The position numbers were made by a program, and so were the translations under genes. Shown piece after piece: positions 21,485 through 58,284 of a DNA stretch of 64,000 nucleotides. This DNA is from Entomortierella parvispora E1425 (taxonomy: Eukaryota > Fungi > Mortierellomycota): NCBI GenBank assembly GCA_020891255.1, contig BQFW01000001.1:186001-250000 (forward strand), written 5' to 3'. Numbering within the stretch: position 1 is the stretch's first letter; every line of letters begins with the position of its first letter. The notes under the pieces were generated by a model, which ran no database searches, was not told where the DNA came from, and saw nothing but the letters and a program-made list of their open reading frames with translations.

Positions 21485-21588
21485 ATCACACGAAGCAAAA
21501 AATTAAAAAAAATGAACAGTCACAAAAAAAAAGACCGTGTCAGGGCCGTTGAACCCAAAAAAAAACACCATCCCACCATCTATTTCCC

Positions 21589-24011
21589 ATGCTCGACATT
21601 CCAGAGCTGGACACCATCATCTGCCGGCAGCTCAGTCGGCAAGATCTCGCGCAATGCGTCCAAGTCTGCAAGAAATGGTCCACAAGTGTTCATCCCTACC
21701 TTTGGCATGATCTCTCGGACCTGTCATTCGAGCATTTTTACCACTTGTGGATGACCGACTACATCTTCACCAGGAACAGGCGTTCAGAGACTGTATTGGA
21801 GCGCGCCTCAGGCATGGACAGCAACAAGAACAAAAACAACAGGAGCCACAGCACTGACAAACCATTAGGAATCGAGGGTTCAGAGGCACCCCTGTTGACG
21901 AAATACGGCCATCTGGTTCAGCTTCTCCCCCCTCCTGAAAAACTCTTGCAGTTTCTGAACCGGGCCGCAGAGGAATGTCAAAGGTGGAGAGCCATACAAG
22001 GATTGCGGGATTCAGACTCATCCTCCTCAGACGAATCCAGCAGCAACCGTCGTCCTTGCTTTGCAAGAAGGGGAAGAATTCCTGGCGCCTCGAATATACC
22101 AATCTTTGCCGTTCCCGCGACAGCTAGACGGGGCACGGCAAGTCGCGCCAGGGCTAGTCGTGGCAGGGGCGCAGGTCGCGGTGGCAAAGGTCGAAGCTCG
22201 AATACAATTCCCTCGCCGCCTTTCTACATGACACAGGATGTGATCTCACGGAAGCACTATCCCAACAACAGTCGGATGTTGATCCACCTGCTCAAGGTCA
22301 GGTGTCCAGTGGCCGTCAGGAACCAGAAGCACTTGACCATTTGCTCAACTATTGTCGGAGCATCTGCCTCCGCGTCCAGATTGCTCATGCAGCTGTATGC
22401 ACCTCACGCAAGGAGTATCACCTTTGGAGATGACGAATCGGGCGACGCGGCCGTGGCTGTGAAGGCGCCGTTCATAAGGCTCGTTCTGGATCTTTGTGCC
22501 AAACCGCTTGAACGCCTGATATTCAACGTCCGCAGTAAGTTTTCCTTTTTTTTAGTATGATGTGGGAAGGAATGCTGTCCCAACTATCGCAGTTTGTCCT
22601 TACAATTTTCGCCTCTTGCTCAAAAAAAAAAAAAAAAAAAAAAAATATAGTGATTGACCACAGAAAAAATTGGGGGCCTCGCTGTGCATGGAAACCTGAG
22701 TCTGAGCCAGAGCGGAGCGACTCCTTGGACGATGATTCTAGCGACGAAGAGGCTGATTCCGGAGACGAGAATATTCGTTCCGACGGGGACATGAAGATCG
22801 AGGACGGTACAGACGACAAGGTGTTGACGGAGATCGAATCTGATAGTGACGGTGGAAAACAAACGGATGATATTGACGACAGGAGCATTCACAGTGGCGG
22901 GAAAGAGGAACTGAAGATGGGTGAGGAGGAAGAGGAGGAAGAGGAGGAAGAGGAGGAAGAGGAGGAAGAGGAGGAAGAACCGAACTTTACTCTAAAGTCG
23001 CTGGAGTTCAGGGGATATAGTGGGCCACAAACTTCGTGGTGGATATGGGATAAGCTACAACTCAACTGCCTGTATCGCTTGGAGCATATCCAACTTTGTG
23101 ATATGGCCGTGGTCAAGACCCTGTTGGAGGAAGACGAGTCTTTTTTGGAGGACATGCTTCCGTACTTGAGCTCTATCAGTTTCGACGGAGGGGACATGTA
23201 CAAGAATCCAAAGCTTTCGGATCCATTGGTCGCCAAGATTTTGGTGTATGGCCGTGATAGCCCAATTGTAGCTGGTAACGGTGAGAAGGAGCCAGCCGAA
23301 TGGAAACAGGTCACTTTTGGGAAGGACGCTAAAGTTTCACTGGAAGCAAGGTGCTTGCTGACTACCGATTCCTTTATTCTGGACGAATTTCGCGAGAGCG
23401 ATCTTGACGAGAGCCTGGTCCAAATCTTACGAATTCAACCTCGACTGAAAACCTTCGAATTGGCGGATGTTTCGGATTCTCCCAGGTTTTACACTGACCA
23501 ACAAAAGTTTAGAGCCTCTGTCTTTGTTGACTACCTGGATCCAAGTCTGAAAACATTCCGACCATGGCCCTGTGCTGTAACTCTTACATTTCTGCAAGTT
23601 CGCATCTCGGGCATTCCTCGTCCTGATCTAGACGAGGATTGCTGCTACGAATGGACACCGGAGGAGCACCCTGGTCAAGGACGTATTCTGCAGCAGCAGG
23701 TGTGCGAGCGACTGGGCACGCTGGTAAATTTGGAGCGGCTCTGGCTGGGGGTCAATCCGACGTTCAAATTTCACCCTGATGTCTACATTCGTCCCAAGCG
23801 AGATGGTCTTGAGTTGACATTGGAGACTGGATTGAAGTCGCTCGGAAATTTGAAAAAGTTGCGCGAAATCAATGTCCGAAGCACTGAGCATCGCATTGGA
23901 GACGAGGAGGTTCGATGGATGAAAGAAAATTGGCCCCTGTTGGAAACCATCCATGGACTAGAACGTGAAGATGGGCTTGTGTACAACAACGAAACAGGCC
24001 TTTATTGGTGA
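21589..24011 (+). CDS. Tandem paralog F-box-like / LRR protein (~768 aa), 2 exons, poly-Glu tract
   Basis: MLDIPELDTIICRQLSRQDLAQCVQVCKKW; exons 21589-22534 (donor gtaagt) and 22651-24011 join in frame; same C-terminal motifs as the upstream paralog; (GAGGAGGAA)6 at ~22922-22978. Confidence 0.82.
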
Positions 24012-24820
24012 TGAAGAACCCTCGTAGCTGCGCCTTCCTTACCTGGTATAAAGAACGCTGTGGCGAATGTCAGTTGTTTACCTGGGTTCGCTCGGTTCGG
24101 TTATAAAAAGATATGGGAGCTCCTCCTTCTCATCCGGGTGCACGGGTTCCCTGATCTGCTGTTCCTTTGTTTCTGACCTGTTACTCGGAATCCGTGCCGC
24201 CGATCGGCTGTGCCTGCAAAAAGGAAGACAAGAGTTTTTTTTGCCAAGCTCTGGCAATTGAACAAACACTGCCGCAGAGCCTATAGGTGATCGATCTAAT
24301 GGGTCGACAGGGTAATATAGTTTGTAAACCAACATGCCTGAGGGTCGATTGAGGCAACTAGTCCATCTAACAGCCCCACAGGTCCGACTCTGGATGAACG
24401 GCGTTTCGATCAGTAAAAAAAAAGATGGTCTCTGAGCTTCCAATTCGATACACTGCCACATCACGTCCTTTCTGGAGAGCCATTCAGTGGCGCGGACTCA
24501 TCGCGGCGAAGCATGCGGTCTTTGCCAGCGGTCCTTTTTTGTGTTGTGCTCAGTTGGCTCTCAAAATGCGGCGTGTGCCCAGCGTACAGTACCAGCAATT
24601 GCTTATTTTAGTGCCACACTTTAGCGTCCTTGTGTCCCCTGTTTGCCACCACCAGCGAGGATGGTGTCTGATGGTGTCATGCCTGTTCCGTTGACAGGCA
24701 TGCCTTTGACACATATAAATAATCGGCCGTGTCTCTTCCGTTATTCGACTTGTCCCTCATCTCACCCATACCCTCTTCACTCTTTCACCCACACCGCTAC
24801 TTTTACACTCTCTCTAAGCC

Positions 24821-25619
24821 ATGAAGTTCTCCACCATCCTTTCCATCGCCGCGGTCTTTGTTGTCGCTGTCGCCGCTGGCCCCACTCCTGTTGAGGAGAA
24901 CACCGTTGCTGCCGTTCCCGAGGTTTACGAAGAGCTCTCTCCCTTCCTGGGAGCACCAATCGAGGGAGGTGTTGACAAGAGAGAAGGTACGTACCTTTAG
25001 AAGTTCGTGTGCTGTTTGTTACTCGTACCTTTTGTGCAACACTGCAGATTTTTTTTTGTTGTTACTGACTGCATTGGGCCTGTCGATCTTGTTTCTTGTC
25101 TATCAGACACCAAAACTGCAGAGCTTGTTGCTGCTGCATCCCTCATCTTTGAAGATGTTGGTCCCCTCGCCGAGGATGTCGAAATCGAGACCCGATCTCT
25201 TGAGAAGAGAGGACGTAAGTTTTTTTAAAGCTCATCGAAAGAGCGTGCTCGATGCAATGGCTCCCTGTCCGTCTGTCCAGCTGTTTGTCTGTTTGCCTGC
25301 TCCTTCAAACTTATACGTTCCTTTGTGTTTTGTAAACCCAGTCCAATGCAAAAAGGGCTATGGTCTTTGCCCCAAGTCCAAGAACAAGTGCTGCCAGCTC
25401 GGTGGTGACTGCTGCAAGAAGGGCTGCTGCAATGCCGGTTCCTGGTGCTATGCTGGCGGCTGCTGCAAGAACAACCAGATGGGTTGCGATAACAAGTCTT
25501 GCTGCCCCCGTAACTCGCGCTGCTGCAAGGGTGGCGGATGCTGCGCCTCGAACCAGAACTGCTGGATCTCAGCCAAGGGCAAGAAGGGCTGCTGCCCCGT
25601 TGGCAAGATTTGCGCCTAA
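24821..25619 (+). CDS. Secreted prepro-peptide (183 aa): signal, acidic pro-region with two Kex2 sites, 93-aa basic mature peptide with 22 Cys
   Basis: Exons 24821-24986, 25107-25214, 25342-25619 with gtacgt/gtaagt donors and cag acceptors join in frame; MKFSTILSIAAVFVVAVAA; VDKR and LEKR; mature GLQCKKGYGLC...CCPVGKICA. Confidence 0.88.
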
Positions 25620-25792
25620 AATGCCTCCTTCTCACTCGAGAGGATAGAGCGACTCTTCTGTCTGGATTTCACTGTTGCCAACTATATATAATAAACCCGC
25701 ATTCTTGTACTGTACATCAAGTTACTCTGGTCTATTTGCGTAAATATGAGCCCCAGGGACTTTATTCATAAATATTGTAAGGGTCGCGGCAT

Positions 25793-27718
25793 CTATCCAG
25801 GTGGATAACTGTAGATATGATTGACCTTTGAGCCAGTATGGGCATACAATCCCGCTCGAGTCATATCGTCTGTTTTGTAATACATTACCCTCCCGTACTC
25901 CAACTTCTGGTATAAGTTCACAGCAACTCTGTATACATCCTCTTGATCCTGATAATCATAAGTATATACGATGATAACACCCGCCTTTGAGTTTTTCGCA
26001 TTAGGATTTTCCTTTGCTGTGGAACACTTTGCCAAGCCTCCTAGTTCATCCTGCTCTGTAAGATGTTTCACTATAGCCCACTTTTCATCAAGGGCAGCCT
26101 TGCTGTAAAACAGCATCCATTTTCCTACACGTGGACCGCTTCTATATTCCTTCGATAGCGATTGTGCCCAAACCCAATAGTCGTTGAATATCTGGGTAGG
26201 ATTCTGTATGTTGGACATTTGCGGGTTCTTGAGACTGTTTGGAAGGCTCGGTGGGTTGAGGCGATTTGGGCCGTCATCCACCAATCGCTGCAACTGATAA
26301 ACAATATGCCCGAAAACTTGAGTAGCCTTTGTTGCCCAGTCGCCAAATTCATTTGAAAAATGAAGCAGAACTGGAGACGTACTCAACGAAAATGTCGGAT
26401 CGTTGTAGCCAGATTCATGCAATACGTCTGTTTTGCACTCCAAGAAAGTCCAGGTAGTGGCATCGGTGACAATTCCATACGAGAATACAGGCGAGGCGTT
26501 GTCACCATCGCGACTATCGTCCTGGAATTTCCGTTTTTGTCCTGTTAACGCACTACCATGCTGGTCATTAGCGTCCTGAAGCTTCCATTTCCGTCCTGAA
26601 GTTATCGTGTCCAGTTGCACCATGTTTCTGGATACTGAGTTACATTCCGTTGGTCCACGAATGGTAACGGCTAGCATCCGTGATGGATCATCCTTTGATA
26701 CAATAGCGTAGTCGAGACATCCGCTCCCTCGCCTTCCTGATATAGCTTTGTTCGGGCACATTGTCAACTCGGGGAAAAGCCCGACCGCATGTATCAGAAA
26801 CACAGCAACATACAGGGAACTTCCAGCCTCAGATGACATAGATTCACCCGTCCACATGGCCATGACAGTGGATTTCAGTGTTCTTAGCAAGTCGTCAACA
26901 GCTTGAAGGTGTGCAGGCGAGGTCAATGGAGTGGATCCAGCAGATCCGAGCTCTTTCAGATTTTGGTCGCCATATATTCTGTCAGAATCAGACAACGTAA
27001 ACTCAGGAAACGGCCGTGGTCGACCCTCGAGACGGATGGAGATTTGTCGATCACCGTTAGTTTGGAGATAAGAGCGCAGGTCCTGGTCCGATTCGGGATA
27101 TATGACCTCCTTGCAATTGGGTTGCTCTATCACAACGCTTCCCTCGGTCCAGACCTTGCTGTTCCATTGCTGCTGGTTGTATACGATATCTCGCAGTTCT
27201 TTTAGAGTAGCTGTTGCGGTATCAGCGGCCCATTGAAAAATAAGTGGTGTCCTGCCTTTGACCTTGACGGTGAACGTGGCGCCTGTAGTAATTTCCGAAA
27301 CTTGGGGAAAGCAGAGTTAATTGCCTGCAAGAGATTAACAAATGACAGCGGATGAAAACATTGATGAAGAGCACATTTATGTTGTACCTCGATGGGGTTG
27401 CTGGACAATGATGTACAATGTTGAGTTGGGTAGTTGATCTTCCAAGACATCGACAAGATCTTCAACGGGACTGAGCTTTGTCGCCGATTGAATCTCTGTC
27501 ACGGCGATTGGTTTGTGTTTGAAAGATGAAAACACAGGACAGGAGACGCGCCAAAGGGTGAGCTCTCCTGCCAGCACTTCGTTGAACCGATGAGTCTTCT
27601 CGGCTTTGATGAGTTTCCGGAGGTGAGCCACAGAACGCAATGAATAGGTCTTGATCGCAAATGCTTTTGACGTGGGATCGCCGTTGACAACACAATTGAC
27701 ACTGATGGCGATGTCCAT
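25793..27718 (-). CDS. Crinkler (CRN)-family protein (~612 aa): Ubl header, REase-like domain, C-terminal DUF1917/Bles03-like domain
   Basis: Exon 1 27718-27388 is a CRN header (ISVNCVVNGDPTSKAF...LRKLIKAEK..RFNEVLAGELTLWRVS...TLYIIVQQP). Exon 2 27300-25793 is in frame using the aag acceptor after branch-like attaac. REase-like GCLDYAI...VQLD...YGIVTDATTWTFLEC, then GKWMLF..LDEKW..LGGLAKCST..VIIVYTYDY.D.EDV.RV..YYKTD..T.AG.Y. Confidence 0.78.
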
Positions 27719-27789
27719 TACGGGGGAGGGGCACTGGTGATGGATGGATGGAGCAAAATGGTTGGAGTGAGGAAGTGAGGAGCGAGAGA

Positions 27790-28595
27790 GGAGGGTGAAA
27801 CCTCCATGCACTCGCGGTCCACCTCTGGCGGGTGTGGGACAAAGTCGAGGCGAAGTCAAGGCGGAGAACCATTTGCTTTGCCTTTGGCCAAATGTGACGT
27901 GCTGAACTTGACAACAGACACTTCTCGCGTTTAATCTCCGCTCGGTAGGCCTCTGGGCTGACCAAAGGACGAAGTGCGTCCTTCTTGGGGAGACTCTTGT
28001 CCTGCCTGAGTAGCTCCACTCGCTGGTCATTGATCTGGGCTGCCAGATCCCCCAACGCGCGTAGCATGACTGCCCCGAAAGAAGAGACCGCTTCTCTGAT
28101 GATGTCGGGAGCGTCGTCATTTTTGAGTACGGCATACAGGAGAAGGTCAACTGGACGGGTGGCGTTGGCCACCGCTTCCTGTAGTTTGACGAGAATCTTG
28201 TCTGTGGATTGACAATTCTTGGAGACAGAGAAAGATTGTGGGATGGTCTTGGGCGTGTAGAGGCGGCCATGAGTGTTTGGATAACCCCGTTGGAACTCTT
28301 TGGTTTCTTCATCGGAACGTCTCTCCGTAAAGAATAGTTCTGGGTCAGAGGGGAGGATCTCTGGGCAGAGATCCACGAGCCATCCTGGAGGGTAAGAGTC
28401 AGGGCGTTGTTCCGAAAGCCTGAAGTTTGGATCATCGTCCCAGAAGGAGATCCGTTCAGGAGCGGAAGCCGTGACCGTAGGGGAAGGAGAGGAAGGTGTG
28501 TGCTCAGCAGCTGGGGCAGGGGCCGCAGCTGCAACAGCCTGGAGAAGTTGAATGAGAAGTGCATTGGTGGTGTTGTGGCTAGGCGGTGTAGACAT
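27790..28595 (-). mobile_element. Truncated, decayed gag-like ORF of a DIRS/tyrosine-recombinase-type retrotransposon
   Basis: ATG at 28595. The string RGYPNTHGRLYTPK..TDKILVKLQEAVANATRPVD..MLRALGDLAAQINDQRVE resembles fungal DIRS gag. An RGG-type tail is in a shifted frame. No RT, RNaseH or YR was found in the window. Confidence 0.6.
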
Positions 28596-42563: not shown

Positions 42564-45500
42564 ATGCCGCATCTTTCCACACAAGAGGTTCTACTGCAAG
42601 CAAAGGCCAGTACGGAGGAGGCTCGAAAAGCCATAGGTTCCGAACGCAAGGTCATAAAGCATTATCAGAACGCAAAGAACACCCTTGCCAAAGTGGATGT
42701 CACGAGGACCAATTCTAAGGATCTGGGAGAGGTCATTGCTGCGTTCGAAAACCTTGCCACGGTGCTGGACCTCTCTGGAGAACTGCCGAAGGAAAAAGCA
42801 GCCAAGTGCAGAAAGAGAGCATGTGCTCTGAGGTAGCCAACCCTTGTTCCCCATTGAGGAAACGGCATCTTGGAAGCACTCTACTTACACTGAACACATG
42901 ATATTGCACATCTACTAGGCAAGAACTCAACGAGAGAATGAGGATCCATGCTGCTGTTATCGCCCCATCTTTGATGGGACCAGGTTTCTCGCCGACAATC
43001 GCCCAAGGAGTCACTCATTGGAGCTTTTCAGCATCGACAGGCAGCACTTCTCCCTCTACGACATTTTTCGCCTCTTCTACTGTCGTAGCAACTAATCCTG
43101 CTTTCACCCATCGGCAGTTGCCTCCCCCCTTTTCCCCTTCAACAATCTCAATTTCGGCGTCTGCTACTATCTCGGGGTGTCCGTCCTTATTTACCAAGAA
43201 TGTCAATCCCAAACCCAATATCTACCCGTTACCTGATCCAGGAGAACTATTGAGATCCACTCAGCAGCTGTCCTACTGCCTTGCACTGTTGCATCCTTCA
43301 GTTCAAGAAGACCAACTCTCCTCTGAAGCCCTCAAGTGGCGATGCGAGACCCTGAAAGATATGGACGAGAAGGATCGCCTGGAAACCTTGGCTGCTCATG
43401 TCTTGGAGGTGTTTACCGCAGATATCAGGAAGGATGCGGCTGCAGTTGCAGAGGTAGTACAGATATCCCCTGTACTCAATAGCGACGATTCTCGGTTTCT
43501 CATCAAAACATTCATCGACACTGTCAACAAGTCGGAGATTCTGGATCTGCATTCACTGGATGGGATGGCCAAGGTGATTCAAGGAGCTGCTCCTGGGTCC
43601 ATCGACTCGGACGACCTTGTGACCATTCTTCGGTGTCTGCACGTACGGCTTCGCCCAACTCACTCAACCGGCCACCAATACCACCTGCTGCTTGCAGCGT
43701 CCCGGGTTTTGGATGCAATGGTGATCTCCCATATCGGAGATGTAGACCGCATCAACCTCCATGAGCCGCTGACGGATTTCCTTCGAGAGTCTGAGTCAAG
43801 CAAGGATCCTTATTTGGCGTTCCAAGCCAAGTACGCCACACAGGCGCTACTCTATGTCTCCGATGATGATAATATCTGGCATGCAGGATTCAGACGAGTT
43901 TGGCTTGTACTGAAAATCGGCGCAGGATTGGCCAAAGTGCTTGACCCCACGGAACTAAAGGACACGCTCGAGAGTATTGAGCAACTATATGACATTGGCA
44001 AGGGAGCGACCAGGATGCTCAAAATCGCTTTGAAGGCCCACAGAGTTGGTGAAGGATATACATTTACGAAGAGGGAGGGCCTCAAGTTCAAGAGAGCCTG
44101 GTACCGTTCCGTTCGCATGGCAGAGTGGCTTATTTCGACTGGCAGGCTGGTGCAGTTCAAGGCTGTGGTTGTTTCCTCGAAATGCCGGCACCAGCTCATG
44201 TTTCAATGGGGAATCTGCCAATTACTTGGACAGTTTATAGCGGATACCCAATGGAGTCTGGAGGCACACCAGGAAGCAGTTGAATTGCTTGGGGCACTAT
44301 ACAAGGACACTACAATTTGGGATCGGCAGAACGCAGTTGATCAAGTCATTTTTGACGTGCTCACCAACATCGCATCCAGTAATGATGCACATTCTGAAGG
44401 TATGCCAATCCCGTATTTCCATTTCCAGATTCATATTCACCAATCAATACAAACCAAGGATACTCGACCGACTCTGACACTTTTATTTTCGCTCTCCATA
44501 TCAATAACATCACACTGTAGCTGCAAAGTTGCTGGAAGAGATACGAAAGGTGAATCCTACTATAAAGCCGATAGCCGACCCACTGTCACCCCTTTGGAAC
44601 ACCATTAAATATGCAGATCCAGCTGGACACTCCATTCCAAGCATTAGATTGCTTAAGGTTGTTCAGGATCGGAGACGTCGGCATGCAAAGTTGGAGAACC
44701 TACCAGACGTCCGTCGAGTCGCAACTTTGAGTGACATCCAGTCGGGTCTTAAGACTTATCACGAACCCACCCTGTATATCCTCAGAGTTTCAGGGGAAAA
44801 GTTGGATCTGGGATCATGCTTTGTCAATCTCGCGATTGTGGAGGCACCAGAACATCGGCAAAAGGAAAAGGAGAACCTTAAAACACAGGCGACTACATTT
44901 CTTCGGATGCCCAGTGGCGAGGGGGTTAGAAATACAAACACCGACTCGTTAATTCCTCTGGATCAGCTCTTCAACAAGCGCAAGCTGCGGGATGGTAAGG
45001 AGGGCATGCCTAAAAGCATCCTAGTCCAAGGGCGGGCAGGCATTGGCAAATCGACATTGTGCAAGAAACTCGTTCATGCACATCAGAATGGACTGTGGAG
45101 GGATCGGTTCGAAATCGTGCTCTGGATTCCACTGCGACATCTCAGGGGACTCAAGAGTCGCACCCTGGACGGATTGTTTATCGAGAGAGTTTTCGTCTCC
45201 CAGGGCTTGAGCCAAGAACAGTCGGCGTTAGCCAGCGCTCTTGTCACCTACGCTCAACAGGGCAAGGTTCTTTTCATCTTTGACGGCCTGGATGAGATTG
45301 TGGCAGAGGCTGGAGGAGACGAAAGCAACACCTTCAGAACATTCTTGAAGATGTTGCTTAGGCAGCAGCATGTCATCATCACCTCAAGACCTTCTGGAGT
45401 TGACATCGGGCTATTACCGAAAATTGATCTCGAGCTGGAAACTATTGGATTCAGTCCGCAGAATGTCAAAGATTTTGTGGTCAAGGTACTCGATCCTGAT

Positions 45501-48332
45501 CCAGCGAGGACAGTCCAAGAGTTCATCCAACGAACACCATTGATTCAAGGACTCGCCAATACCCCTGTGCAACTCGACGTGATCTGCTTCAGCTGGAATT
45601 CGCTCCCAACAGAAGACTTGGCAGTCACGATGACCGGACTGTATCGATTGATGGTGCGGAAACTCTGGTGCAAGGATGCACTTCGGCTCAACAAGACTGA
45701 TGGTGGAATACCGCTGACTGAGCGACAAATTCACGATTATGAACCAGAAGAAATCGACGACTTGATGGCGACTGAGCTGCAGTATCTTGGATATCTTGCC
45801 TTTAAAGGGATGATCAACCATCACCAAATTGAATTTGAGGAAAAAGACCTACGATCTACATTTCGAGATCTCAAGAGCTTTGCAGCAAATAACCAACAGC
45901 TTTCACCTGCCCATCTCGTCGAAGTCATAAAAATGACGTCATTTTTGCATTCAGCTGACTCAGACATGGATCCCAAGAAGGGCAGTGTTCGGCAAGCCTG
46001 GCATTTTTTGCATCTGACGTTCCAAGAATACTTCGCGGCAACATGGATAGTGCGCCATTTTCGACCTCGGAAACCATGCTCCTCGTCTGGAATGATGACT
46101 ACAGAGGAGATGACAGCCTTTGTTCACCAACACAAATACAACCCTCAGTATGAAATTGTATGGTCGATGGTGGCAGGGTTGTTAGATGGAAACCCATTGG
46201 ACAAGTTTTTTGAACTTTTGCAAGGAGAGCCACGGGATTTGATTGGAGGACGCCACCAGCAGATCCTGGTCTCTTGCCTTCATGAGGCGCGAGCCCGATT
46301 GGACCCGTTAGTCGTGGCTTCGTACGATTCAGAGCTTGCAAGGTGGCTGCAATTGGAGATATGTACGCGTGATGATAACTTCTCTGGAAGCATTCTAGGG
46401 AGTCATCTGTCGTTCCCTGAGAACCTTCTAGTTGAAGCTATAAGTGTCGGGCATTCCAACAAAGCCTCCTTCATACGCACTTTAGGATCACGATCTGTAT
46501 TGTCGCAATCTGCCCTCCAGTCACTCGTCATCGCACTTAAGGATGACGATAGAGATGTCAGGATGTCAGCAGCATCAGCATTACGCAACCAGTCATCGCT
46601 GACGGAATCAGCCGTCCAGTCCCTCATCGCCACACTCAAGGATAACGATAACAATGTCAGGTCTTCAGCAGCATCGACATTAGGCAACCAGCCTTCGTTG
46701 CCGGAATCAGCTGTCCAGTCTCTCATCGCCACACTCAAGAATGACAATAAAAATGTCAGATCCTCAGCAGCATCAGCATTGGGCATGCAGTGTTCGTTGC
46801 CGGAATCGGCCATCCAGCCTCTCATCGCCACACTCAAGGATGACAATAAAAATGTCAGGTCTTCAACAGCATCAGCATTAGGCAACCAGCCTTCGTTGCC
46901 GGAATCTGCTATCCAGTCTCTCATCGCCACACTCAAGGATGACAATTGGAGTGTCAGGTCTTCAGCAGCATTTGCATTAGGCAAGCAGTCTTCGTTGCCG
47001 GAATCAGCCATCCAATCTCTCTTCGCCACACTCAAGGATGACGATATAAATGTCAGGTCTTCAGCAGCATTTGCATTAGGCAAGCAGTCATCATTGCCGG
47101 AATCGGTCGTCCAGTCTCTCATCTCCGCACTCAAGGATGACGATGAAAATTTCAGGTCTTCAGCAGCATCAGCATTAGGTATGCAGTCTTCATTGCCTGA
47201 ACCAGTTATTCTTTCCCTCACCGCCACACTCAAGGATGACGATGGCAATGCCAGGTCTTCAGCAGCATTTGCATTAGGCAACCAGCTTTCGTTGCCGGAA
47301 TCAGCTATCCAGTCTCTCATCGCCACACTCAAGGATGACGAATGGCTTGTCAGGTCTTCAGCAGCATCAGCGTTAGGCAGGCAATCTTTGTTGCCTGAAT
47401 CGGCCGTCCAGTCGCTCTTCGCCACACTCAAGGATGACGATATAAATGTCAGGTCTTCAGCAGTATCAGCATTAGGCTGGCGGGCTTCGTTGCCGGAATC
47501 AGCCATCCAATCTCTCTTCGCCACACTCAAGGATGACGATATAAATGTCAGGTCTTCAGCAGTATCAGCATTAGGCTGGCAGTCTTCGTTGCCGGAATCG
47601 GTCGTCCAGTCTCTCATCTCCGCACTCAAGGATGACGATGAAAATTTCAGGTATTCAGCGGCATCAGCATTAGGCAGTCAGTCTTTGTTGCCGGAATCAG
47701 CCATCCAGTCTCTCATTGCCGCACTCAAGGATGACAATTGGATTGTCAGGTTTTCAGCAGTATCAGCATTAGGCAACCAGTCTCCGTTGCCGGATTCAGC
47801 TATCCAATCTCTCATCACCGCACTCAAGGATGAAGATAGCTATGTCAGGATGTCAGCAGCGTCAGCATTAGGCAAGCAGTCCTCATTGCCTGAATTAGCC
47901 ATCCAGTCTCTCACTGCCACACTCAAGGATGAGGATAGTGATGTCAAGTCTTCAGCATCATCAGCATTAGGCAAGCAGCCTTCGTTGTCGGAATCGGCCA
48001 TCCGATCTCTTATCGCAGCACTTGAAGATGGCAGTGGGATGGTTACAAGTCCTATTTTAGGAGCTCTTGAAAGCCATAGTCCCTCGGTATTCAGTGCACT
48101 GCTGTTCCTATCAGAAGATGAGATAGATCGTCTTTTTAAGTATCACCTGCTTCTCTACAGCCTCGGTCATGTCATTTCCTTGCAGGTTTATGACAACGGA
48201 CTGCATTGCTGCACGGAGCAAGGCGCGCTGAAAGTACAGATCTCTCCCAGTGGTAGCTCCAGGCTGGATACTATATCAGCAGTCTTTAAGGTGGCTCAAC
48301 AGAAGGCGTTGGATTTTTCAAATTCCACTTGA
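42564..48332 (+). CDS. NLR-like STAND protein 1 (1853 aa): TPR-like N-terminal helices, Ser/Thr linker, ARM-like domain, NACHT, 15 x 33-aa HEAT repeats plus cap
   Basis: Exons 42564-42832, 42919-44399, 44521-48332 join in frame (5562 nt); Walker A GRAGIGKST; Walker B VLFIFDGLDEI; HFLHLTFQEYFAA; repeats SLPESAIQSLIATLKDDxxxVRxSAAxALGxQS at ~46490-48080. Confidence 0.92.
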
Positions 48333-50089
48333 AAAATAAAAAATAGACTCCCCCTTTTACTTTTGAAAACACCCTTATAAACGTTGGTCAAAGAGAAAGC
48401 TGCTCACAAACCCTCCGATCATTCACCTACATCCGACTTGGACTTGGCTCTTGGGAAGACCAAGGAAATGAGAGATCTTGTTAGAGGGTTGAGAAGATGA
48501 GAAGCGGGGATCAATGGGGGAGAAACTAAGTGGGGTCTGCTTTGCCCATTTTGAGATTTTTTTTTGTTCTCTCTGTGCACGTTCCAAGTCGGGTTCATTG
48601 TTGAAACCAGCAAACTTGCCCCTGAATATATCCTCGAGCCATGTCGGGGGGGAACTGCAGCCCTGATCAACGGCTAACGAATGGAAATACTCAGTCAGGG
48701 CAAGTGTCTCCCCAAGAAGGACGTACCGCGTCCCTCGGTCAGCCCTATAGCTTACGACCACAAAAAACGTCCCCCAACAACTTCTAGAACCAGAAGTCAT
48801 GATCTGGTCCAAACAAAGGAGGCAATAATTCCAACTCTGGCGGCAGCATCCATCCAATCTGCCCCTTGTCAACATCATCGTCCAAATCGCAAGGGCCGGC
48901 AAGACGAGATTCTGTCAATGCATAACGTCCACCTATCTTGCATTCATCCATTCTAATTGGATACACGGCCATTGGCGATTAGTTTATCAGTCGCCATCAT
49001 CAACACCACAGCCCCAAGTCTTGTAACGTGAAAGGAAAGCACAGCTTTGGATACCACCCCGTCATCCGTCATTCCTGTACCCACCCATCCTCATCAGATA
49101 CGCAGAATCAAAGCTTTTCCTGTTTCTGGACATCATCAACGCCACGACTTGAAATCCATTTACGAAGGAGCCCGACAACAGATACTGCGTACCGCTTATT
49201 CATCATACATTCAGCAACATGTCTGGATGCGGGAATCTGGGCGTCATGTTATCACTCGTCGCCGCTCATTCCTACGTAACCATTATTAATAAACTTAATC
49301 AACAAACAAAGGATGGATGAGGATATACTACATTGCGTGCGTCCTGTTGGCAGGGCTCCTAGATAATGGGCATCTTCATTTCTGTAGGAGAGGCACACTG
49401 GCCAGATTCAAGGATTGCACCGTAACTTACAGGTGTGGACCTAGCATGAGCTGCAGTGAAGATGGCTCTGGGGGAGAGGCAGTGGGGCTTGGAAACACCA
49501 GCGCTTTTGTCCTTGCCGTTGTCCTCGCCCCAAACAGCCGTCAACAGAGGTTGTTGCTTGATGCATCGGCTGCTGTCCGAGGGGGGTTTATTTGGCAAGA
49601 GCTGACGATTAGTCTGTGCTGACCTCAACCTGGCAACGTTTGGATCTGGCACGAATCGGCGGTCCGGAGACTACCAATGGATCCTTCAGCCGCCGTTCAA
49701 CAATTGGCTTGGCCAGAACCCGCGCTTTGTCTTTACTGACCTTAACTTGGTAAGCTCTGGATCTGGTTCGGGTCGGTGGTCCGTCTTCATCTTCCTCCTC
49801 CTCCTAAGCGATCAGAACATCAATGTTAATTTCCACGTGCTCTTTCGAAATGGGCGTAACTGAAGCCGACGATTGTTTGTTGGGTCATATAATCCAACGG
49901 TTGGAGTACAATGGAGATGACGTGGCACATTCAACAGAAATGTTTGGTCCAAGATCCCTCAGTGAGGGCTCTTGGAGGTGAGAAAACAGAGGACCAGAAC
50001 AAAACTAAATGTACAAAGCGAGTTTTTGATTTTGATTTTTTTTTATTTTTCTTCTCATGTGGAACTTGCCGTTCTCCTTCTTTCCCCAC

Positions 50090-51150
50090 TTATCCCTCCT
50101 GCTTGATCACCAGCTCGGACAAGCTGTCTGTTCCTTCATTCATCCTTCAATCATCACAGGTTCTTCTCGTTGGCCAGATGCAGCAGATAAATGAAGCAGA
50201 GCGGCACAGAGATATCCCTCAGCTTCTGCTCTAGATATATCTTGCTTAGTCCCCTAAAGATCTCTATAAATCCTTACTCCTTCTTGACGTAGTCCCCGCT
50301 TGGATCCTCCACATCATCATTGTTGTCATCCTTGTTTTCGTCTTTACCGTCCCCTGCCTCTGTGCCATCCTCCTCTTCCCTTTCCTTGCGACTCTTCTTG
50401 CGCTCGCCATCGTCCCGACTGCCAGGTTGGCCATCTCCTTCCAGGTGTTGTCCTTCAGTTTCTTCACGCCCACCTTCTTGGCTGTCTTGGAGAAACTGAT
50501 ATACGCCGCCTTGACCCTCTTGGGCTCAGAGACCAACTGACTGGCATAGTCGTTTCCATCGCCCTGACTCTCCAGTCCAAATCCAAGTCCGAGCAGCGTC
50601 TTGCTGGCAGCAGCCTCCGCTCCTCCTGGTCCAAAGAATCCTTGCTGCTGGAATCCATACTCGACATCGTCGTCCTTACAATGAACGACGGTCTCATAAA
50701 CATCTACATCTTATAGTTGCTTGGACGAAAAGCAGACATCATCGGAGAAGGACGTATTTCCTGTTGCTCATGTCGGCTTCCCGAGATGGTGTCGTTGATG
50801 GCGTCGATTACCTTCTGCTGGTGCAAACAAGTCGTCCTCGTCTCCCCGTCTACTCCACCCGCGTTCAAGAAATCAATGACGATCGCAGTCTTTTCTCCGC
50901 ATTTCATTGGTCCTAGTGCCCCGCCTTCTTCTGCAGGTGTCTCCTCATCCGCACAGGTGTAGGTTTTCTCTAGAGTGAAAAAAAAAAAAAGAAAATCAAT
51001 AGTCAGTCCTCTGCACCCCTTGGAAATGACAAGTAAATAGATTCAAATACACCAAATACCCTCCCTCACCTTTGGGGATGCGCCTTAATTTCATGTGTTC
51101 TATGTTCTGGCCCAGCATAGTTGCATATCAGAGTTCCATAAAATCTGGGT
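50090..51150 (-). pseudogene. BRN1: Second copy of the decayed condensin kleisin fragment
   Basis: Near-identical to 40378-41450 with largely the same lesions; N(Y)AGPEH..KLRRIPK followed by donor gtgagg. Confidence 0.82.
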
Positions 51151-51756
51151 CATGATCCCATCTGCATCATGAGGTCCAGGTCTCGGGCCTAAATCCAAAT
51201 CCTCGAATGCATCCACTTTTCCACCCATGCACGATGGTATTCGGATTGATGCTGTTGTTGCTGTTTAGATTCCTTGGACGATTGTTGTTTTCGGGCATGG
51301 ACAGAAACGAACGACCTCCCTGCATCGCGTACATCCAATGGGGAAGGATGCCGCTCTGCTCACCGTACAATCCTGTAGTAACACCCAGGGAGAGAGTCCA
51401 TGAGCATGAAATGAAGAGAGGAAGGAGCATGAAATGAAGAGAGGAAGGAGCATTCATGAGTCACTTAGTCCTGCCTTGGTCTTTGGATTCATGTCTTGTC
51501 TGCTCGGTCATCCATCAGTAGGGTAGGGGCCATGTTGGAGTACAGTTGGTGGTCAGGAGCAGGGGGAACAAAAAGAGAGAAAAAAGGTGCACACACGTGA
51601 TCTGTCTGATCGATGGACCCATGGTTCGCACCTCGGCCTCTCTCTCTCCCTCCTTCGCATCGATAACCTTGAAGGAGACGGAGAGGCCATGTGCACCACA
51701 GGAACAGAACCAATCCATCCCATGTGTTCGGGAGAGGGAGAGAGGCCGCTCAACGG

Positions 51757-51802
<46 letters not shown>

Positions 51803-52278
51803 AGGTACTCGTACTTCGTTTTTGACGCCACCAAACACAACTCGGCCCTCTGCATCCTCAATGCATCCTCAATGTACATTCATTCATGCAGGCTCCATTC
51901 CTGACAGCAAAGGGAGAACAACTCCCCATGGGCACCCAATGCTGCAGTCAACTGCAGTGACCACAACGGAGGGCGCACAGTTTGTTTGCCCTTGCTTGTG
52001 CTTCGCCAACATGCATTAATGCTCACAACAGCCACAGGGGGAAAGCAACTCTGCTCTTGCTTCTTTCCATCCGTTCCCACCCTCACTCTTATTCACCCCA
52101 CCACCCTTTTCAAAATCGACCTTTTCTTTTCGTCCCAGCTTCAAAGACCTGTGCTTGTCCACAACAAGGGTATCCAAACGGCTCTCCCAAGGTACAAGCA
52201 CCGCATCTACAACAGTCGAGACCTCCACCCTGAGGTCGGCCTCTAATTCTTGTTGCGCATAGCTTGTAGAAACCCAGC

Positions 52279-55200
52279 ATGCCGCATCCTTCCACGCAAG
52301 AGGCTCTACTGGAAGCAAAGGCCAGTACGGAGGAGGCTCGAAAAGCCATGGGATCCGAACGCAAGGTCATTAAGCATTATCGGAATGCAAAGAATACCCT
52401 CGCCAAAGTGGATGTCACGAGGACCAATTCTAAGGATCTGGGAGAGATCATTGCTGCGTTCGAAGACCTTGCCGCGGTGCTAGACCTCTCAGGAGAACTG
52501 CTGAAGGAAAAAGCAGCCAAGTGCAGAAAGAGAGCAGGTGCTCTGAGGTAGCTAACCCTTGTTCCCTATTGAGGAAACGGGTTGAAGCACTCTACTTATA
52601 CTAAGCACATGATATTGCACAACTACTAGGCAAGAACTCAACGAGAGAATGAGGCTACATGCTGCAGCTCTCGCACCGTCTTTAGTGGGGCCAGGGTTCT
52701 CTCCAACAATTGCTCAAGGAGGAGTCACTCCTTGCAGCTCTTCAGCATTGACAAACAACACCACCTCCAGCCCCCCTTTTATCGCCACTACCGCCGCAAC
52801 TGCTGTCAACACTACCTCAACGCTTCACCCATCGTCTCATCTTCTCTCTCAGCCAGCGATCTCGGTTATGGTGGCTAGTTCAGCCTTAGGATCACCATCG
52901 TTCTTTGGTACGAATGTTGCTCCCAAGCCCAACATACATCGGCTGCCTAATCCAGGAGAGCAACTGGAATCCACTCGGCAACTCGCCTATTGTCTCGCAC
53001 TTTTGCAGCCGTCAGTTCAACATAACGATCTTTCGCAGGATTATCTCAGGTGGCGACTTGACACCTTGAATAACTCGGGAGAGAAGGATCGCTTGGAGAC
53101 TATAGCCGACGATGTCATCCAGGCAGTTACCAAGGACAATATGAAGGATGCGGCTAATGTTGCTGAGGTTGTCCAACTGGCCCCTGTGCTCAGTGAAGAG
53201 CACTCTCGGTCCCTCATCGCGACCTTGATCGACGCTGTGAACGAGTCAGAGATTCTACATTTGCATCCATTGAATGGCTTGGCAATTGCGATTCAAGGAG
53301 CCTCTCCAGGAACCCTCAATGTGGACGACCTTGAGAGTATCCTTCGGTGCCTGCTCAAGCGACTCAAGCTTACTCGCTCACCAGAGTATCGATATCCCCT
53401 GCTACTTGCTGTTTCGCGTGTTTTGGATGCAATGGTGAGCGCCAATATCAAGGATGTCGACCGCGTCAACCTTCATGGACCATTAACAGAGTTCCTTCGA
53501 GATGTGGAGTCAAATGAAGACCCATACTTGACATTCCAAGTCCAGTATGCCACGCAGGCTCTGCTCAATGTGCCTGATGATGACGATATTTGGCATGCTG
53601 GATTCAGACGATTCTGGTTTTTATTGAATGTTGGAGCAGGACTGGCCAATGTGCCTGACCCAACGGACCTGAAGGACACGCTCGAAAACCTGGAAAAACT
53701 TTACAAAGCCGGCAAAGCCGGCATCAGTAATCTCAAGGCTATCTTGAATGATGCAATCAAAGGCGCTGATGGCAGTCTAACATTCACTGTCAAGGAGGGC
53801 CTGAAGTTCAAGAGCGCATGGTACCCTGCCATTCGTGAAGCCAAATCATATATCGAGACTGGAAGGCTAGTGGAGTTCAAGATGTTGGTCACCACTACAC
53901 CGTGCCGACACGAACCCATGTTTCAATGGGGCATCTGCCAGTTGCTTGGACAGTTTGCACTTGATAACCGATGGAGTCTGGAGATGCAGCAACAGGCAAT
54001 TACCTTCATCGAAATGCTCTACAAGGACACTACACTTTGGGATCGTCAAAAGGAAGTTGATCAGGTCATCCTTGACGTACTCACCAACGTGGCTTCCCGA
54101 AATGACACGCACTTCGAGGGTATGTGAATGTGGAGTGACGGTCCTGTACCCATTACTGTTACCCAATAACCTACCAAATGCTTCCTAAACTAATGCAAAT
54201 GCTTTCCACCGCCCCCTCTATAGCCGCCAAGTCCATATTGGAAGAAATGGGAAGGCATAATACAAAGTTAAACCCTTTTGCCGATCTACATTCGCCTATT
54301 TGGATCAGCTTCAAATTTGCGGATCCGGACACGCACCCCACCTCAAAGTTTAGACTGTTGAAGACTGTTCAGAATCAACACCGTAGGGATGCAAAGTTGG
54401 AGAACCTACCAGACGCCTATCGAGTCACAACCTTGAGTGACATTCAGTCGGCTCTCAAGAACTATCACGAACCCATCCTGCATATCCTCCGAGTTTCAGG
54501 GGAGAAGCTGGATCTGGAATCATGCTTTGTCAATCTCGCAATTGTGGAGGCACCACAGCATCGGCAAAAGGAAAAGGAAGACCTTAAAATACAGGCGGCT
54601 ATGTTCCACCGGATGCCCAGTGGCGAAGGCGTGCGAAATACAAACACCGATTCATTAATCCCTCTGGATCAGCTTTTCAACAAGCGCCGGTTACGTGATG
54701 GTAAGAGGGATGTTCCTAAAAGGATCTTGGTCCAAGGACGAGCAGGCATTGGCAAATCGACATTGTGCAAGAAACTCGTTCATGCGCACCAGAATGGACT
54801 GTGGAGAGATCTGTTCGAAATAGTGCTCTGGATTCCACTGCGACATCTCAGGGGACTCGAGAGTCGCACCCTGGAAGGGCTCCTTCGCGATAGAGTTTTC
54901 ATCTCTCAATACCTCGATCACGAACAGGCAGATTTGGCCAAGGCTCTTGCTATCTGCGCTCAGAAAGGCACCGTTCTATTCATCTTGGACGGCCTGGATG
55001 AGATTGTCGCAGAGGCTGGAGACGAAAGTAACACCTTCAGAACATTCTTGAAGGTGTTGCTTGGGCAGCAACATGTCATCATCACCTCAAGACCTTCTGG
55101 AGTTGACATCGGGCTATTACCGAAAATTGATCTCGAATTGGAAACTGTTGGATTCAGTTCACAAAATGTCAAAGACTTTGTGGTCAAGGTACTCGATCCT

Positions 55201-58200
55201 GATCCAGCGAGGACAGTTCAAGAGTTCATTCAACGGACTCCATTGATTCAAGGACTCGCCAATATCCCTGTCCAACTGGATGTGATCTGCTTCAGCTGGA
55301 ATTCACTCCCAACAGAAGGCATGACAGTCACGATGACCGGACTGTATCAATTGATGGTGCGGAAACTCTGGTGCAAGGATGCACTTCGGCTCAACAAGAC
55401 TGATGATGGAATACCGCTGACTGCGCGACAAATTCACGATTATGAACCAGAAGAAATCGACAAATTGATGGAGACTGAGCTGCAGTATCTTGGATATCTC
55501 GCGTTCAAAGGGATGACCAACCATCACCAGATTGAATTTGAGGAAAGAGACCTACGATCCACATTTCAAGATCTCAAGAGCTCTGCAGCAAATAACCAAC
55601 AGCCTTCACCTACCCATCTCGTCGAAGTCATGAAAAAGACGTCATTTTTGCATTCAGCTGACTCAGACATGGATCCCAAGAAGGGCAGTGTTCGGCAAGC
55701 CTGGCATTTTTTGCATCTGACGTTCCAAGAATATTTCGCAGCAACATGGATAGTGCGCCATTTTCAACCTCAGCAACCATGCTCCACGGCTAGAATGATG
55801 ACTACAGAGGAAATGACAGCCTTTGTTCACCGGCACAAATATAACCCTCAGTATGAAATTGTATGGTCAATGGTGGCAGGGTTGTTAGACGGAAACCCGT
55901 TGGACAACTTTTTCGAACTTCTGCAAGGAGAGCCACGGGATTTGATTGGAGGACGCCACCAGCAGATCCTGGTCTCTTGTCTTAATGAGGCGCGGGCTCG
56001 ATTGGACCCAACAGTCATGGCAGCATACGACACAGAGCTTGCAAGGTGGCTGCAATTGGAGATACGTAGGCTTCAAGTTCGGTTCGCCGGAAGAATAGGG
56101 ATTACAAGCATTCGAAGCATTTTAGGGAGTCAGCTGTCGTTCCCTGAAGGACTTCTAGTTGAAGCTATAAGTTCCGGGCATTCGAACAAAGCCTCTGTCA
56201 TACGCACTTTAGGATCGCGATCTGTATTGTCAAAATCAGCCATCCAGTCTCTCATCGCCACACTTAAGGATGACGATAGTGAAGTCAAGTCTTCAGCAGC
56301 GTCAGCATTAGGCAAGCAGTCTTCGTTGCCGGAATCAGCCATCCAGACTCTCATCGCCACACTCAAGGATGACGATAGTGGCGTCAGGTCTTCAGCAGCG
56401 TCAGCATTAGGCAAGCAGTCTTTGTTGCCGGAATCAGCCATCCAGTCTCTCATCGCCACACTCAAGGATTACAATTGGAGTATCAGGTCTTCAGCAGCAG
56501 AGGTATTAAGCAAGCTGTCTTCGTTGCCGGAGTCAGCCATCCAGTCTCTCATCACCATGCTTGAAGATGACGATGAAGATGTCAGGGATTCAGCAGCAGA
56601 GGTATTCGGCAAGCGGTCTTCGTTGCCGGAATCAGCCATCCAGTCTCTCATCACCTCACTCAAAGACGACTATTGTGGTGTTAGGTTTTCAGCAGCAGAG
56701 GCATTAGGCAAGCAGTCTTCGTTGCCTGAACCAGCTATTCTTTCCCTCGCCGCCACACTCAAGGATGACGATGAAAATGTCAGGTCTTCAGCAGCAGAAG
56801 CATTAGGTAACCAGTCTTCGTTGCCGGAATCGGCCGTCCAGTCTCTCGTCACCTCACTCAAAGATGACGATTGGGATGTCGTGTCTTCAGCAGCATTTGC
56901 ATTAGATAAGCAGTCTTCGTTGCCGGAATCAGCCTTCCAGTCTCTCGTCACCGCACTCAAGGATGACGATAAAAATGTCAGGTCTTCAGCAGCAGAGGCA
57001 TTAGGCAATGTGTCTTTGTTGCCAGAATCAGAAATCCAGTCTCTCATCGCAACACTCAAGGATGACGATAGTGATGTCAGGTCTTCAGCAGCAGAGGCAT
57101 TAGGCAAGCAGTATTTTTTGCCGAAATCAGCCATCCAGTCTCTCGTCACCGCACTCAAGGATGACGATAGTGATGTCAGGTCTTCAGCAGCAGAGGCATT
57201 TGGCCAGCTGTCTTCATCAGCAGCTGAAGTAGGCGAGTTGTTTTTGTTGCCGGAATCAGCCATCCAGTCTCTCATCGCAACACTCAAAGATGACTATTGG
57301 GGTGTCAGATATTCAGCAGCATCAGCATTTGGCAATATGTCTTCCTTGCCGGAATCAGCCATCCAGTCTCTCATCACCGCACTCAAGGATGACGATAGTA
57401 ATGTCGGGTCACGGGCAGCATCAGCATTAGGCAGTCGGTCTTGGTTGCCTGAATCAGCTATCCAGTCTCTCATCGCTGCACTCAAGGATAACGATTGGCA
57501 TGTCAGGACTTCAGCAGCAGAGGTATTAAGGAAGCACCGTTCGTTGCCTGAATCAGCAATCAACTCCCTCATCGCCGCACTCAAGGATGACAATAGGAAT
57601 GTCAGGTCTTCAGCAGCTGAGGCATTAGGCAAGCAGTCTTCATTGCCTGGACCAGCTATTCTTTCCCTCACCGCCACACTCAAGGATGACAATGGCAACG
57701 TCAGGTCTTCAGCAGCTGAGGCATTAGGCAGGCAGTCTTCGTTGCCTGAATCGGTCATCCTGACTCTCATCGCCACACTAAAGGATGACGATAAAAATGT
57801 CAGATCTTCAGCAGCAAAGGCATTAGACAATCTGTCTTTGTTGCCGGAATCAGCCATCCAGTCTCTCATCGCCGTATTCAAAGATGACGATTGGGATGTC
57901 ATGTCTTCAACATCATCAGCATTAAACAAGCAGCCTTCGATGCCGGAATCGGCCATCCGATCTCTTATCGCAGCACTTGAGGATGACAGTGGAGGATTTA
58001 ATTTTTTTGTTTCAGAAACCCTTGAAAGCCATATTCCCTCGGTATTCAGTGCACTGCTATTCCTGTCAGAAGATGAGATAGGTCGTATTTTTAACCACCT
58101 GCTTCTCTACAGTTTCAGTCATGTCATGTCCTTACAGGTATATGACAACGGACTGCATTGCTGCGCGGAGCAAGGCGGGCAACAAGTACAGATATCTCCT

Positions 58201-58284
58201 AGTGGTAGCTCGAGGCTGGATACTATATCAGCAGTCTTTAAGGCAGCTCAGCAGAAGGCATTGGATTTCTCTAATTCCACTTGA
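52279..58284 (+). CDS. NLR-like STAND protein 2 (1939 aa): same architecture, 17 x 33-aa HEAT repeats plus cap
   Basis: Exons 52279-52547, 52630-54119, 54224-58284 join in frame (5820 nt); intact Walker A/B; HEAT array ~56218-58030 with a 10-aa partial-repeat insertion after repeat 10. Confidence 0.92.

Follow-up and report, generated by a model that had tools for sequence, protein, structure and literature searches.

Repeat-bearing NOD-like receptors (NLRs) of fungi have been described in Podospora, where the WD40 genes HET-E/D/R, ANK and TPR genes and the HEAT gene Pa_6_7270 carry near-identical tandem units that vary at a few hypervariable binding-face positions and are gained, lost and shuffled. 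Pa_6_7270 is a NACHT gene whose 33-residue HEAT repeats are internally conserved and polymorphic in number (PMC4986451, PMC13449251). The tree-of-life survey of internally conserved repeats in PMC13449251 left out HEAT and pooled the non-Dikarya fungi. PMC12258605 defines N-NACHT/HEAT NLRs and counts 26 of them in Entomortierella parvispora E1425. PMC9815663 describes a long helical N-terminal NLR domain common to Mortierellomycetes and to Mycoavidus, Burkholderia-related endosymbionts of Mortierellaceae. NLRs common to the fungus and Mycoavidus, with ~45-50% identity, are reported in PMC11291939, which asks whether they act in the symbiosis, a question also raised in PMC9815663. Here, we analysed a 64,000-nucleotide window of E. 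parvispora E1425 (positions 186001-250000 of contig C1; the genome comprises 38.9 Mb in 20 contigs). The window carries two genes, A and B, which by their sequence are intact tandem paralogs of the Mortierellaceae N-NACHT/HEAT NLR family and are very probably among the 26 genes counted in PMC12258605.

The NLR family of this species and its sharing with Mycoavidus are already published (PMC12258605, PMC9815663, PMC11291939). What is new here is descriptive: a stripe of five variable sites in the HEAT repeats that is equivalent to that of the artificial binder alphaRep, the turnover of the arrays, and the same design in the paralogs of the endosymbiont. Our literature search turned up no paper that connects these arrays with alphaRep, reports variation at their individual sites, or describes the mirrored pattern in the endosymbiont.

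The original prediction had named 15 and 17 repeats of 99 bp each, built on the scaffold SLPESAIQSLIxxLKDD...VR.SAA.ALG, and both Tandem Repeats Finder and the in-register units bore this out. The program reported a period of 99 bp with 15.3 copies at 46500-48016 (score 1865) in gene A and with 9.9 + 7.9 copies at 56234-57987 in gene B, where the unit spacing is 43 instead of 33 residues at a partial duplication (periods of 129 and 228). The scaffold was found in both arrays, as were all the variants listed after KDD (NWS, DIN, DEN, EWL, DSY, YCG, DWD, YWG, DWH) and all the residues listed after VR (S/M/Y/F/D/T), SAA (S/F/E/K) and ALG (N/M/K/R/W/S). Among the 32 canonical units of both genes, entropy is highest at positions 19 (2.86 bits), 20 (2.34) and 31 (2.19), followed by positions 1, 11, 13, 27, and 33 (1.5-1.6 bits), 32 (1.45) and 23 (1.37), and positions 2 and 10 are invariant. 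The family set, taken from contigs C1, C2, C6, C7, and C13, comprised 30 arrays with a total of 458 units and up to 43 units per array, and its statistics were drawn from ~4-kb array loci and 13 stretches of C13, C2, and C1. Entropy in these 458 units is highest at positions 20, 19, 1, 27, and 23, and in 758 units from other Mortierellaceae genera the top five variable positions are exactly 23, 19, 20, 27, and 31. The entropy of helix B exhibits a strong 100-degree helical moment (permutation p = 0.0018), with positions 19, 20, 23, 27, 30, and 31 on one arc and 21, 22, 25, 28, and 29 on the other. By this periodicity, the five positions 19, 20, 23, 27, and 31 form one stripe on helix B. Tryptophan accounts for 18.6% of the residues at position 19 compared to 0.18% at the non-variable positions, which speaks for the selection of binding residues and against drift as the only cause. 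Tyr/Phe are enriched at position 23, and the NW-type motif is seen again both in other genera and in Mycoavidus.

AlphaRep, derived from the MTH187-type PBS-lyase HEAT-like family (PDB 3ltj, 6fsq, 6bzx), is randomised at positions 18, 19, 22, 23, 26, and 30 of a 31-residue module. These positions form the concave binding face in co-crystals, and the design took both the positions and their residue frequencies from natural repeats of the family (PMC3754942). When the gene A array was searched against the PDB with phmmer, the best sequence matches were all alphaReps (E 7e-70 to 1e-13), and MTH187, the natural template of alphaRep, matched with E 7e-6. A single-sequence AlphaFold model of the array (mean predicted local distance difference test score, pLDDT, of 80) is a regular two-helix solenoid. 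Foldseek with this model gave the alphaRep 6fsq as the top match, and 6bzx with TMt 0.75 and 41% identity. Judged against the PDB, the array repeats are the closest natural relatives of alphaRep. The phmmer alignment equates alphaRep positions 18, 19, 22, 23, 26, and 30 with unit positions 19, 20, 23, 24, 27, and 31, so that 5 of the 6 alphaRep variable positions are the most variable helix-B positions here. The sixth (unit position 24) is mostly Ser/Ala in the arrays, and the corresponding alphaRep position 23 carries small residues (PMC3754942). The two repeats have in common ~40% identity, the helix-B pattern KD(D/E)D-xx-VR-x-(S/A)A-x-ALG-x and a similar C-cap. They differ in length, the unit being 33 residues here (99 bp throughout) rather than 31 because the inter-unit linker (QSSLPES) is 2 residues longer, and in setting, since alphaRep is an artificial binder whereas the array is naturally fused to a NACHT domain. 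The proposed likeness to a natural alphaRep library therefore stands as to the positions, which equal alphaRep 18, 19, 22, 26, and 30, but the resemblance is partly built in because alphaRep copied natural variability. The expectation that the variable sites lie on one face agrees with the helix-B moment, and by alphaRep homology and helix periodicity this would be the concave face. Entropy, the helical moment and the equivalence to the concave-face positions of alphaRep all point to variation at a few putative binding-face positions.

Mapping the annotated proteins P0001 (gene A) and P0003 (gene B) back to the window gave two 3-exon genes with GT..AG introns, and the splicing of both is based on the public annotation and on GT..AG consistency. 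Gene A lies at 42564-48332 on the + strand and encodes P0001 of 1853 aa; gene B lies at 52279-58284 on the + strand and encodes P0003 of 1939 aa. Their features, in window coordinates, are as follows.

42564..42832, + strand: gene A exon 1, N-terminal helical bundle of ~90 residues; exact match to P0001.
42919..44399, + strand: gene A exon 2, disordered Ser/Thr/Pro-rich linker, then ARM_5 (PF23948) at ~43352-44362; Pfam E 1.9e-55.
44521..48332, + strand: gene A exon 3, NACHT, helical domains, HEAT array, C-terminal tail and stop codon; open frame of 1267 codons.
45018..45491, + strand: gene A NACHT; Pfam E 1.8e-19.
45030-45053, + strand: gene A Walker A, GRAGIGKS, located in the sequence.
45270-45296, + strand: gene A Walker B, LFIFDGLDE, located in the sequence.
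46005..46040, + strand: gene A HETHS motif, FLHLTFQEYFAA, diagnostic of NAIP-like N-NACHT; weak NLRC4_HD2 match.
46497..48080, + strand: gene A HEAT array, 16 units of 33 residues (15 canonical and a degenerate C-cap); HEAT_2 E 6.9e-126.
48081..48329, + strand: gene A C-terminal tail, ~83 residues, conserved, 3' of the array.
52279..52547, + strand: gene B exon 1, N-terminal helical bundle; match to P0003.
52630..54119, + strand: gene B exon 2, linker and ARM_5 at ~53045-54079; Pfam E 3.8e-51.
54224..58284, + strand: gene B exon 3, NACHT, HEAT array, tail and stop codon.
54721-55194, + strand: gene B NACHT; Pfam E ~2e-19.
54736-54759, + strand: gene B Walker A, GRAGIGKS, located in the sequence.
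54976-55002, + strand: gene B Walker B, LFILDGLDE, located in the sequence.
55708-55743, + strand: gene B HETHS motif, exact FLHLTFQEYFAA.
56224..58035, + strand: gene B HEAT array, 18 units (17 canonical and a cap); HEAT_2 E 1.3e-95.
57214..57243, + strand: gene B partial duplication, in-frame, 10 residues of helix B, between units 10 and 11.
58036-58281, + strand: gene B C-terminal tail, ~83 residues, conserved, 3' of the array.

The span given originally, 46490-58030, has correct coordinates but takes in less than the two whole genes: it includes the arrays, each of which is the 3' part of its gene, together with the spacer and the 5' portion of gene B. The public annotation names both genes 'bilin biosynthesis protein', which is a misnomer, presumably caused by the PBS-lyase-type HEAT repeats. 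Minus-strand open reading frames (ORFs) inside the arrays (46403-47629, 56670-57287, and 57294-57956) were judged to be by-products of a repeat that has no stops on the opposite strand, and nothing supports them.

Domain order is the same in the two proteins: first a helical bundle at the N-terminus, then a disordered linker, ARM_5, a NAIP-like NACHT, the HEAT array, and a conserved tail. The Pfam scan returned ARM_5, NACHT, very strong HEAT families, and a weak NLRC4_HD2 match. Walker A, Walker B, and the HETHS motif are intact in both genes. According to PMC12258605, the HETHS consensus FLHLT[FY]QEYFAA separates N-NACHT from T-NACHT, and genes A and B both contain exactly FLHLTFQEYFAA. Pfam HEAT_2 in both genes and the solenoid model place the C-terminal repeats among the superstructure-forming ones. 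The earlier view of A and B as NLR-type proteins is thus upheld by the NACHT domain with its intact Walker motifs, the NAIP-like HETHS motif and the C-terminal HEAT solenoid. The N-NACHT/HEAT NLRs presented in PMC12258605 have the same HETHS-motif NACHT subtype and the same C-terminal repeat class; in genes A and B the N-terminus consists of a helical bundle and ARM_5, and the family amounts to ~30 arrays here. Animal NAIP/NLRC4-type NLRs have the NAIP-like NACHT and the weak NLRC4_HD2 match in common with A and B, and oligomerisation on ligand is presumed. Their sensor is formed by LRRs, whereas it would be a HEAT solenoid here, and genes A and B contain no CARD, BIR, or PYD.

An alignment-based AlphaFold model of residues 1-600 of the gene A protein predicts a confident four-helix bundle at residues 1-107, mostly encoded by exon 1 (helices 6-22, 27-42, 51-70, and 75-107; pLDDT ~85-92). 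Residues 101-177 are predicted to be disordered and are followed by an ARM-like solenoid. The ARM_5 region fits the 'NLR_Helical' domain of PMC9815663, matched by description alone. For the N-terminus, Pfam, Foldseek against the PDB, and a wide VIA-align search gave only generic ARM/importin-alpha-like and helical-bundle/TPR-like matches with Z typical of helical noise, and an ESM Atlas search with the N-terminal region gave no usable hit. Of 120 fungal relatives, 67 matched a profile of the exon-1 bundle, and of 67 Mycoavidus ORFs none did; the bundle therefore looks like a fungal addition made after the transfer discussed below. On its model, it is a candidate signalling module without a recognisable family. 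The tail is present in 36 of the 120 relatives, from several genera, with 25 hits ending within 10 residues of the C-terminus. Its AlphaFold model, of low confidence, contains three short strands and one helix.

The ratio of non-synonymous to synonymous change (omega) was estimated from independent closest unit pairs and by tree-based counting. Per-site pairwise Nei-Gojobori estimates over all 32 units were set aside because multiple hits inflate the proportion of synonymous differences at variable codons. For 92 independent closest unit pairs of this genome, omega was 1.27 (bootstrap confidence interval, CI, 1.03-1.55) at the six a priori alphaRep sites and 0.55 in the scaffold. At the a priori sites it was 1.21 (0.95-1.56) in pairs from contig C1 only and 1.12 (0.80-1.53) when the closest pairs only were used. 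Tree-based counting yielded 1.05-1.2 at positions 1, 19, 20, 23, and 27. For the Mycoavidus units, the a priori sites gave 1.02 (0.84-1.22) and the remaining sites 0.49. Between genes A and B, omega was 0.32 in the NACHT region, 0.26 in the ARM exon, and 0.21 in the C-terminal tail, which on this estimate is under purifying selection. By these codon comparisons, the constraint that holds the rest of the protein is clearly lifted at the variable sites. The non-synonymous excess that had been anticipated there is marginal: omega exceeds 1 in the genome-wide set but not significantly in the subsets, and is 1.02 in Mycoavidus. The evidence for positive selection from these estimates is weak. In Podospora, positive selection and repeat-number polymorphism have been demonstrated, whereas omega here is ~1.0-1.3. 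In Logan short-read contigs, which are fragmented and paralog-mixed and come with no genome-wide baseline, other samples under the same species label contained 0-6% of the locus words, in pieces ~80-89% alike; the source sample matched the locus exactly.

The arrays of A and B are unequal in unit number and, with no diagonal of orthologous units between them, are not collinear; the NACHT regions are 85% identical. Within gene A, units A6-A7 and A11-A12 represent a recent block duplication (93/99 nt identical), and identical units occur within some other arrays of the genome. The 10-residue duplication at 57214-57243 in gene B is probably a scar of unequal recombination, and it may kink the solenoid locally. 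The arrays were rebuilt by unit duplication and shuffling after genes A and B had duplicated. Non-collinear arrays together with block and partial-unit duplications correspond to the unit gain, loss and shuffling (concerted evolution) of the Podospora genes. Unit identity averages ~78% pairwise at the nucleotide level and 87-89% to the unit consensus, lower than the 80-100% of Podospora WD40 units. At the protein level, a Psim-like score was 0.80 for gene A and 0.78 for gene B, above the threshold of 0.7 for high internal conservation; our score is the identity to the unit consensus, whereas the threshold of PMC13449251 (Psim >= 0.7) uses T-REKS. This score was at least 0.70 in 11 of the 23 arrays that have at least 8 units. 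Synonymous divergence (dS) between A and B was 1.07 in the ARM_5 exon, 0.13 in exon 1, and 0.30 in the NACHT region. The divergence of the ARM_5 exon, far above that of exon 1 and NACHT, is consistent with cassette exchange.

About 30 HEAT arrays of the family are clustered in the genome, mostly distally on contigs: at 230-665 kb of C1, at 154-334 kb of C6, at 2.15-2.36 Mb of the 2.66-Mb C13, and on C7 and C2. One open frame on C7 (2758686-2763767) consists of 43 units. The window itself, 186-250 kb from a contig end, lies in a variable region rich in conflict-type genes. At 17396-28564 it encodes, among others, two F-box-like proteins and one protein each with a CBM_5_12, a Crinkler N-terminal, and a Bles03 domain.

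The original prediction had suggested a link to bacterial endosymbionts and a comparison with Mycoavidus homologs, and Mycoavidus genomes indeed hold many homologs of the whole architecture. A profile of the NACHT region was scanned against one genome per prokaryotic species. It yielded 168 stretches, of which the best 80, corresponding to 71 distinct loci, were kept. Among these best 80, nearly all lie in metagenome-assembled genomes (MAGs) of Mycoavidus cysteinexigens (MAG contigs L044-L105; an example locus starts at L054:4225). The Mycoavidus homologs are 42-47% identical over ~520 residues of the NACHT-helical region, and one 3-Mb genome contains at least 15 such loci. Their ORFs run uninterrupted for 1100-2500 residues, and an IS3 transposase adjoins one of them; they are therefore not fungal contamination. 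Two of these ORFs were domain-scanned, and both contain NACHT and HEAT, one also ARM_5. The Mycoavidus arrays (533 units) have the same 33-residue scaffold, with entropy peaks at the same sites; one array of 22 units has 75% mean identity. The Mycoavidus ARM_5-NACHT-HEAT proteins thus have the domains, the 33-residue unit and the variable sites of the fungal proteins, but they are intronless single ORFs on a bacterial chromosome and lack the exon-1 bundle. More distant relatives of the NACHT region, with 26-29% identity, are found in Parachlamydiaceae and gammaproteobacterial MAGs (L106-L114). PMC12258605 cites Rickettsiales cases, to which Parachlamydiaceae and gammaproteobacteria add other likely intracellular bacteria.

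A phylogeny built from 87 sequences unites the fungal proteins in one clade, with a support of 100 in the Shimodaira-Hasegawa-like approximate likelihood ratio test (SH-aLRT). In this quick tree, the fungi are nested inside a Mycoavidus grade. Mycoavidus as the donor, as read from this nested tree, was dropped, because in the approximately unbiased (AU) test the tree with Mycoavidus monophyly was the better one (p 0.785) and was not rejected. As the test leaves Mycoavidus monophyly standing, nothing here points to ongoing exchange. The phylogeny that the original prediction had called for thus fits one old transfer, in either direction, followed by separate expansions.

We regard it as fairly probable that genes A and B are N-NACHT/HEAT NLRs whose variable concave face binds ligand and whose unit turnover makes new specificities. 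This sensor reading, reached by analogy, is the best available one. The concave face of the HEAT array would bind a ligand, and binding would release the autoinhibition of the NACHT domain. The NACHT domain would then oligomerise with ATP, and signalling would follow once this has brought the N-terminal domains into proximity, as it does in other STAND/NLR proteins. Unit turnover and free change at the five sites would provide new specificities across the ~30 paralogs. Candidate ligands are endosymbiont, antagonist or conspecific proteins, and by the same analogy the genes may serve in the sensing of endosymbionts or in allorecognition. Several observations weigh against this picture. Placing the stripe on the concave face relies on alphaRep homology and helix periodicity, not on coordinates. 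No recognisable death, enzymatic or pore-forming effector was found at the N-terminus by Pfam, ESM Atlas, Foldseek against the PDB, or VIA-align, and no RNA run among those searched contains the locus. Throughout the natural PBS-HEAT family, variation falls on these same positions, and alphaRep uses them for that reason. Omega at the variable sites is near 1, and for the C1-only and closest-pair subsets its CI spans 1. Much of the pattern would therefore be explained if constraint on exposed positions were relaxed.

Taken to its end, the latter argument would make the variation mere release of solvent-exposed helix-B sites and the arrays scaffolds or regulators with indifferent surfaces. The omega values of ~1.0-1.3 in the fungus and 1.02 in Mycoavidus, with CIs touching 1, are what it expects, and a scaffold omega of ~0.5 is itself high. 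It does not sit well with the tryptophan content of position 19 and the Tyr/Phe content of position 23, which are far from neutral expectation, with the NW-type motif recurring in other genera and in Mycoavidus, or with the paralog expansion, clustering and unit turnover, which resemble those of known diversity-generating NLRs. Moreover, an omega of ~1 averaged over many pairs can hide episodic selection. We consider such indifference rather unlikely. Somewhat less likely still is that the family acts mainly in the relation of host and endosymbiont, with host copies that sense or restrain Mycoavidus and Mycoavidus copies that serve as decoys, antagonists or bacterial defence. The close and numerous Mycoavidus homologs, their arrays with the same scaffold and variable sites, and the single fungal clade would suit such a role, and the sharing and the same question appear in PMC11291939 and PMC9815663. 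On the other hand, we saw no sign of secretion of the bacterial proteins or of interaction between the two sets, and the tree is consistent with a single old transfer, separate expansions afterwards and no ongoing exchange. Many Mortierellaceae isolates also live without endobacteria. Genes A and B might instead be allorecognition determinants of the heterokaryon-incompatibility type, like HET-E/D/R of Podospora, with which they have internally conserved, site-variable repeats and tandem paralogs in common. The Pfam scan, however, found no HET or HeLo domain, Mortierellaceae are largely coenocytic, and to our knowledge vegetative incompatibility is not established for them; we judge this role improbable.

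A bolder form of the endosymbiont idea, which we rate as a long shot, is that host and endosymbiont each keep dozens of ARM_5-NACHT-HEAT proteins from one ancient transfer, with the same binding-face sites, and that the two sets act on each other. If this were true, Mycoavidus copies might be delivered to the hypha, where they would serve as decoys or join host NLR assemblies as poison subunits, or the arrays of each partner might recognise proteins of the other. Fungus and bacterium would then be engaged in a mirrored receptor arms race within their symbiosis.

For the preferred reading of A and B as NLR sensors, the five unit positions 19, 20, 23, 27, and 31 provide a concrete, testable map of the presumed binding face. 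The repeats are a natural counterpart to the alphaRep scaffold on which the engineering of binders could draw. The pattern known from the WD40, ANK, and TPR receptors of Dikarya, near-identical repeats with a few free surface sites, is extended to a large HEAT family of an early-diverging fungus and its endosymbiont lineage. With a repertoire common to host and symbiont, Mortierellaceae and Mycoavidus are an attractive system for asking what fungal NLRs do.

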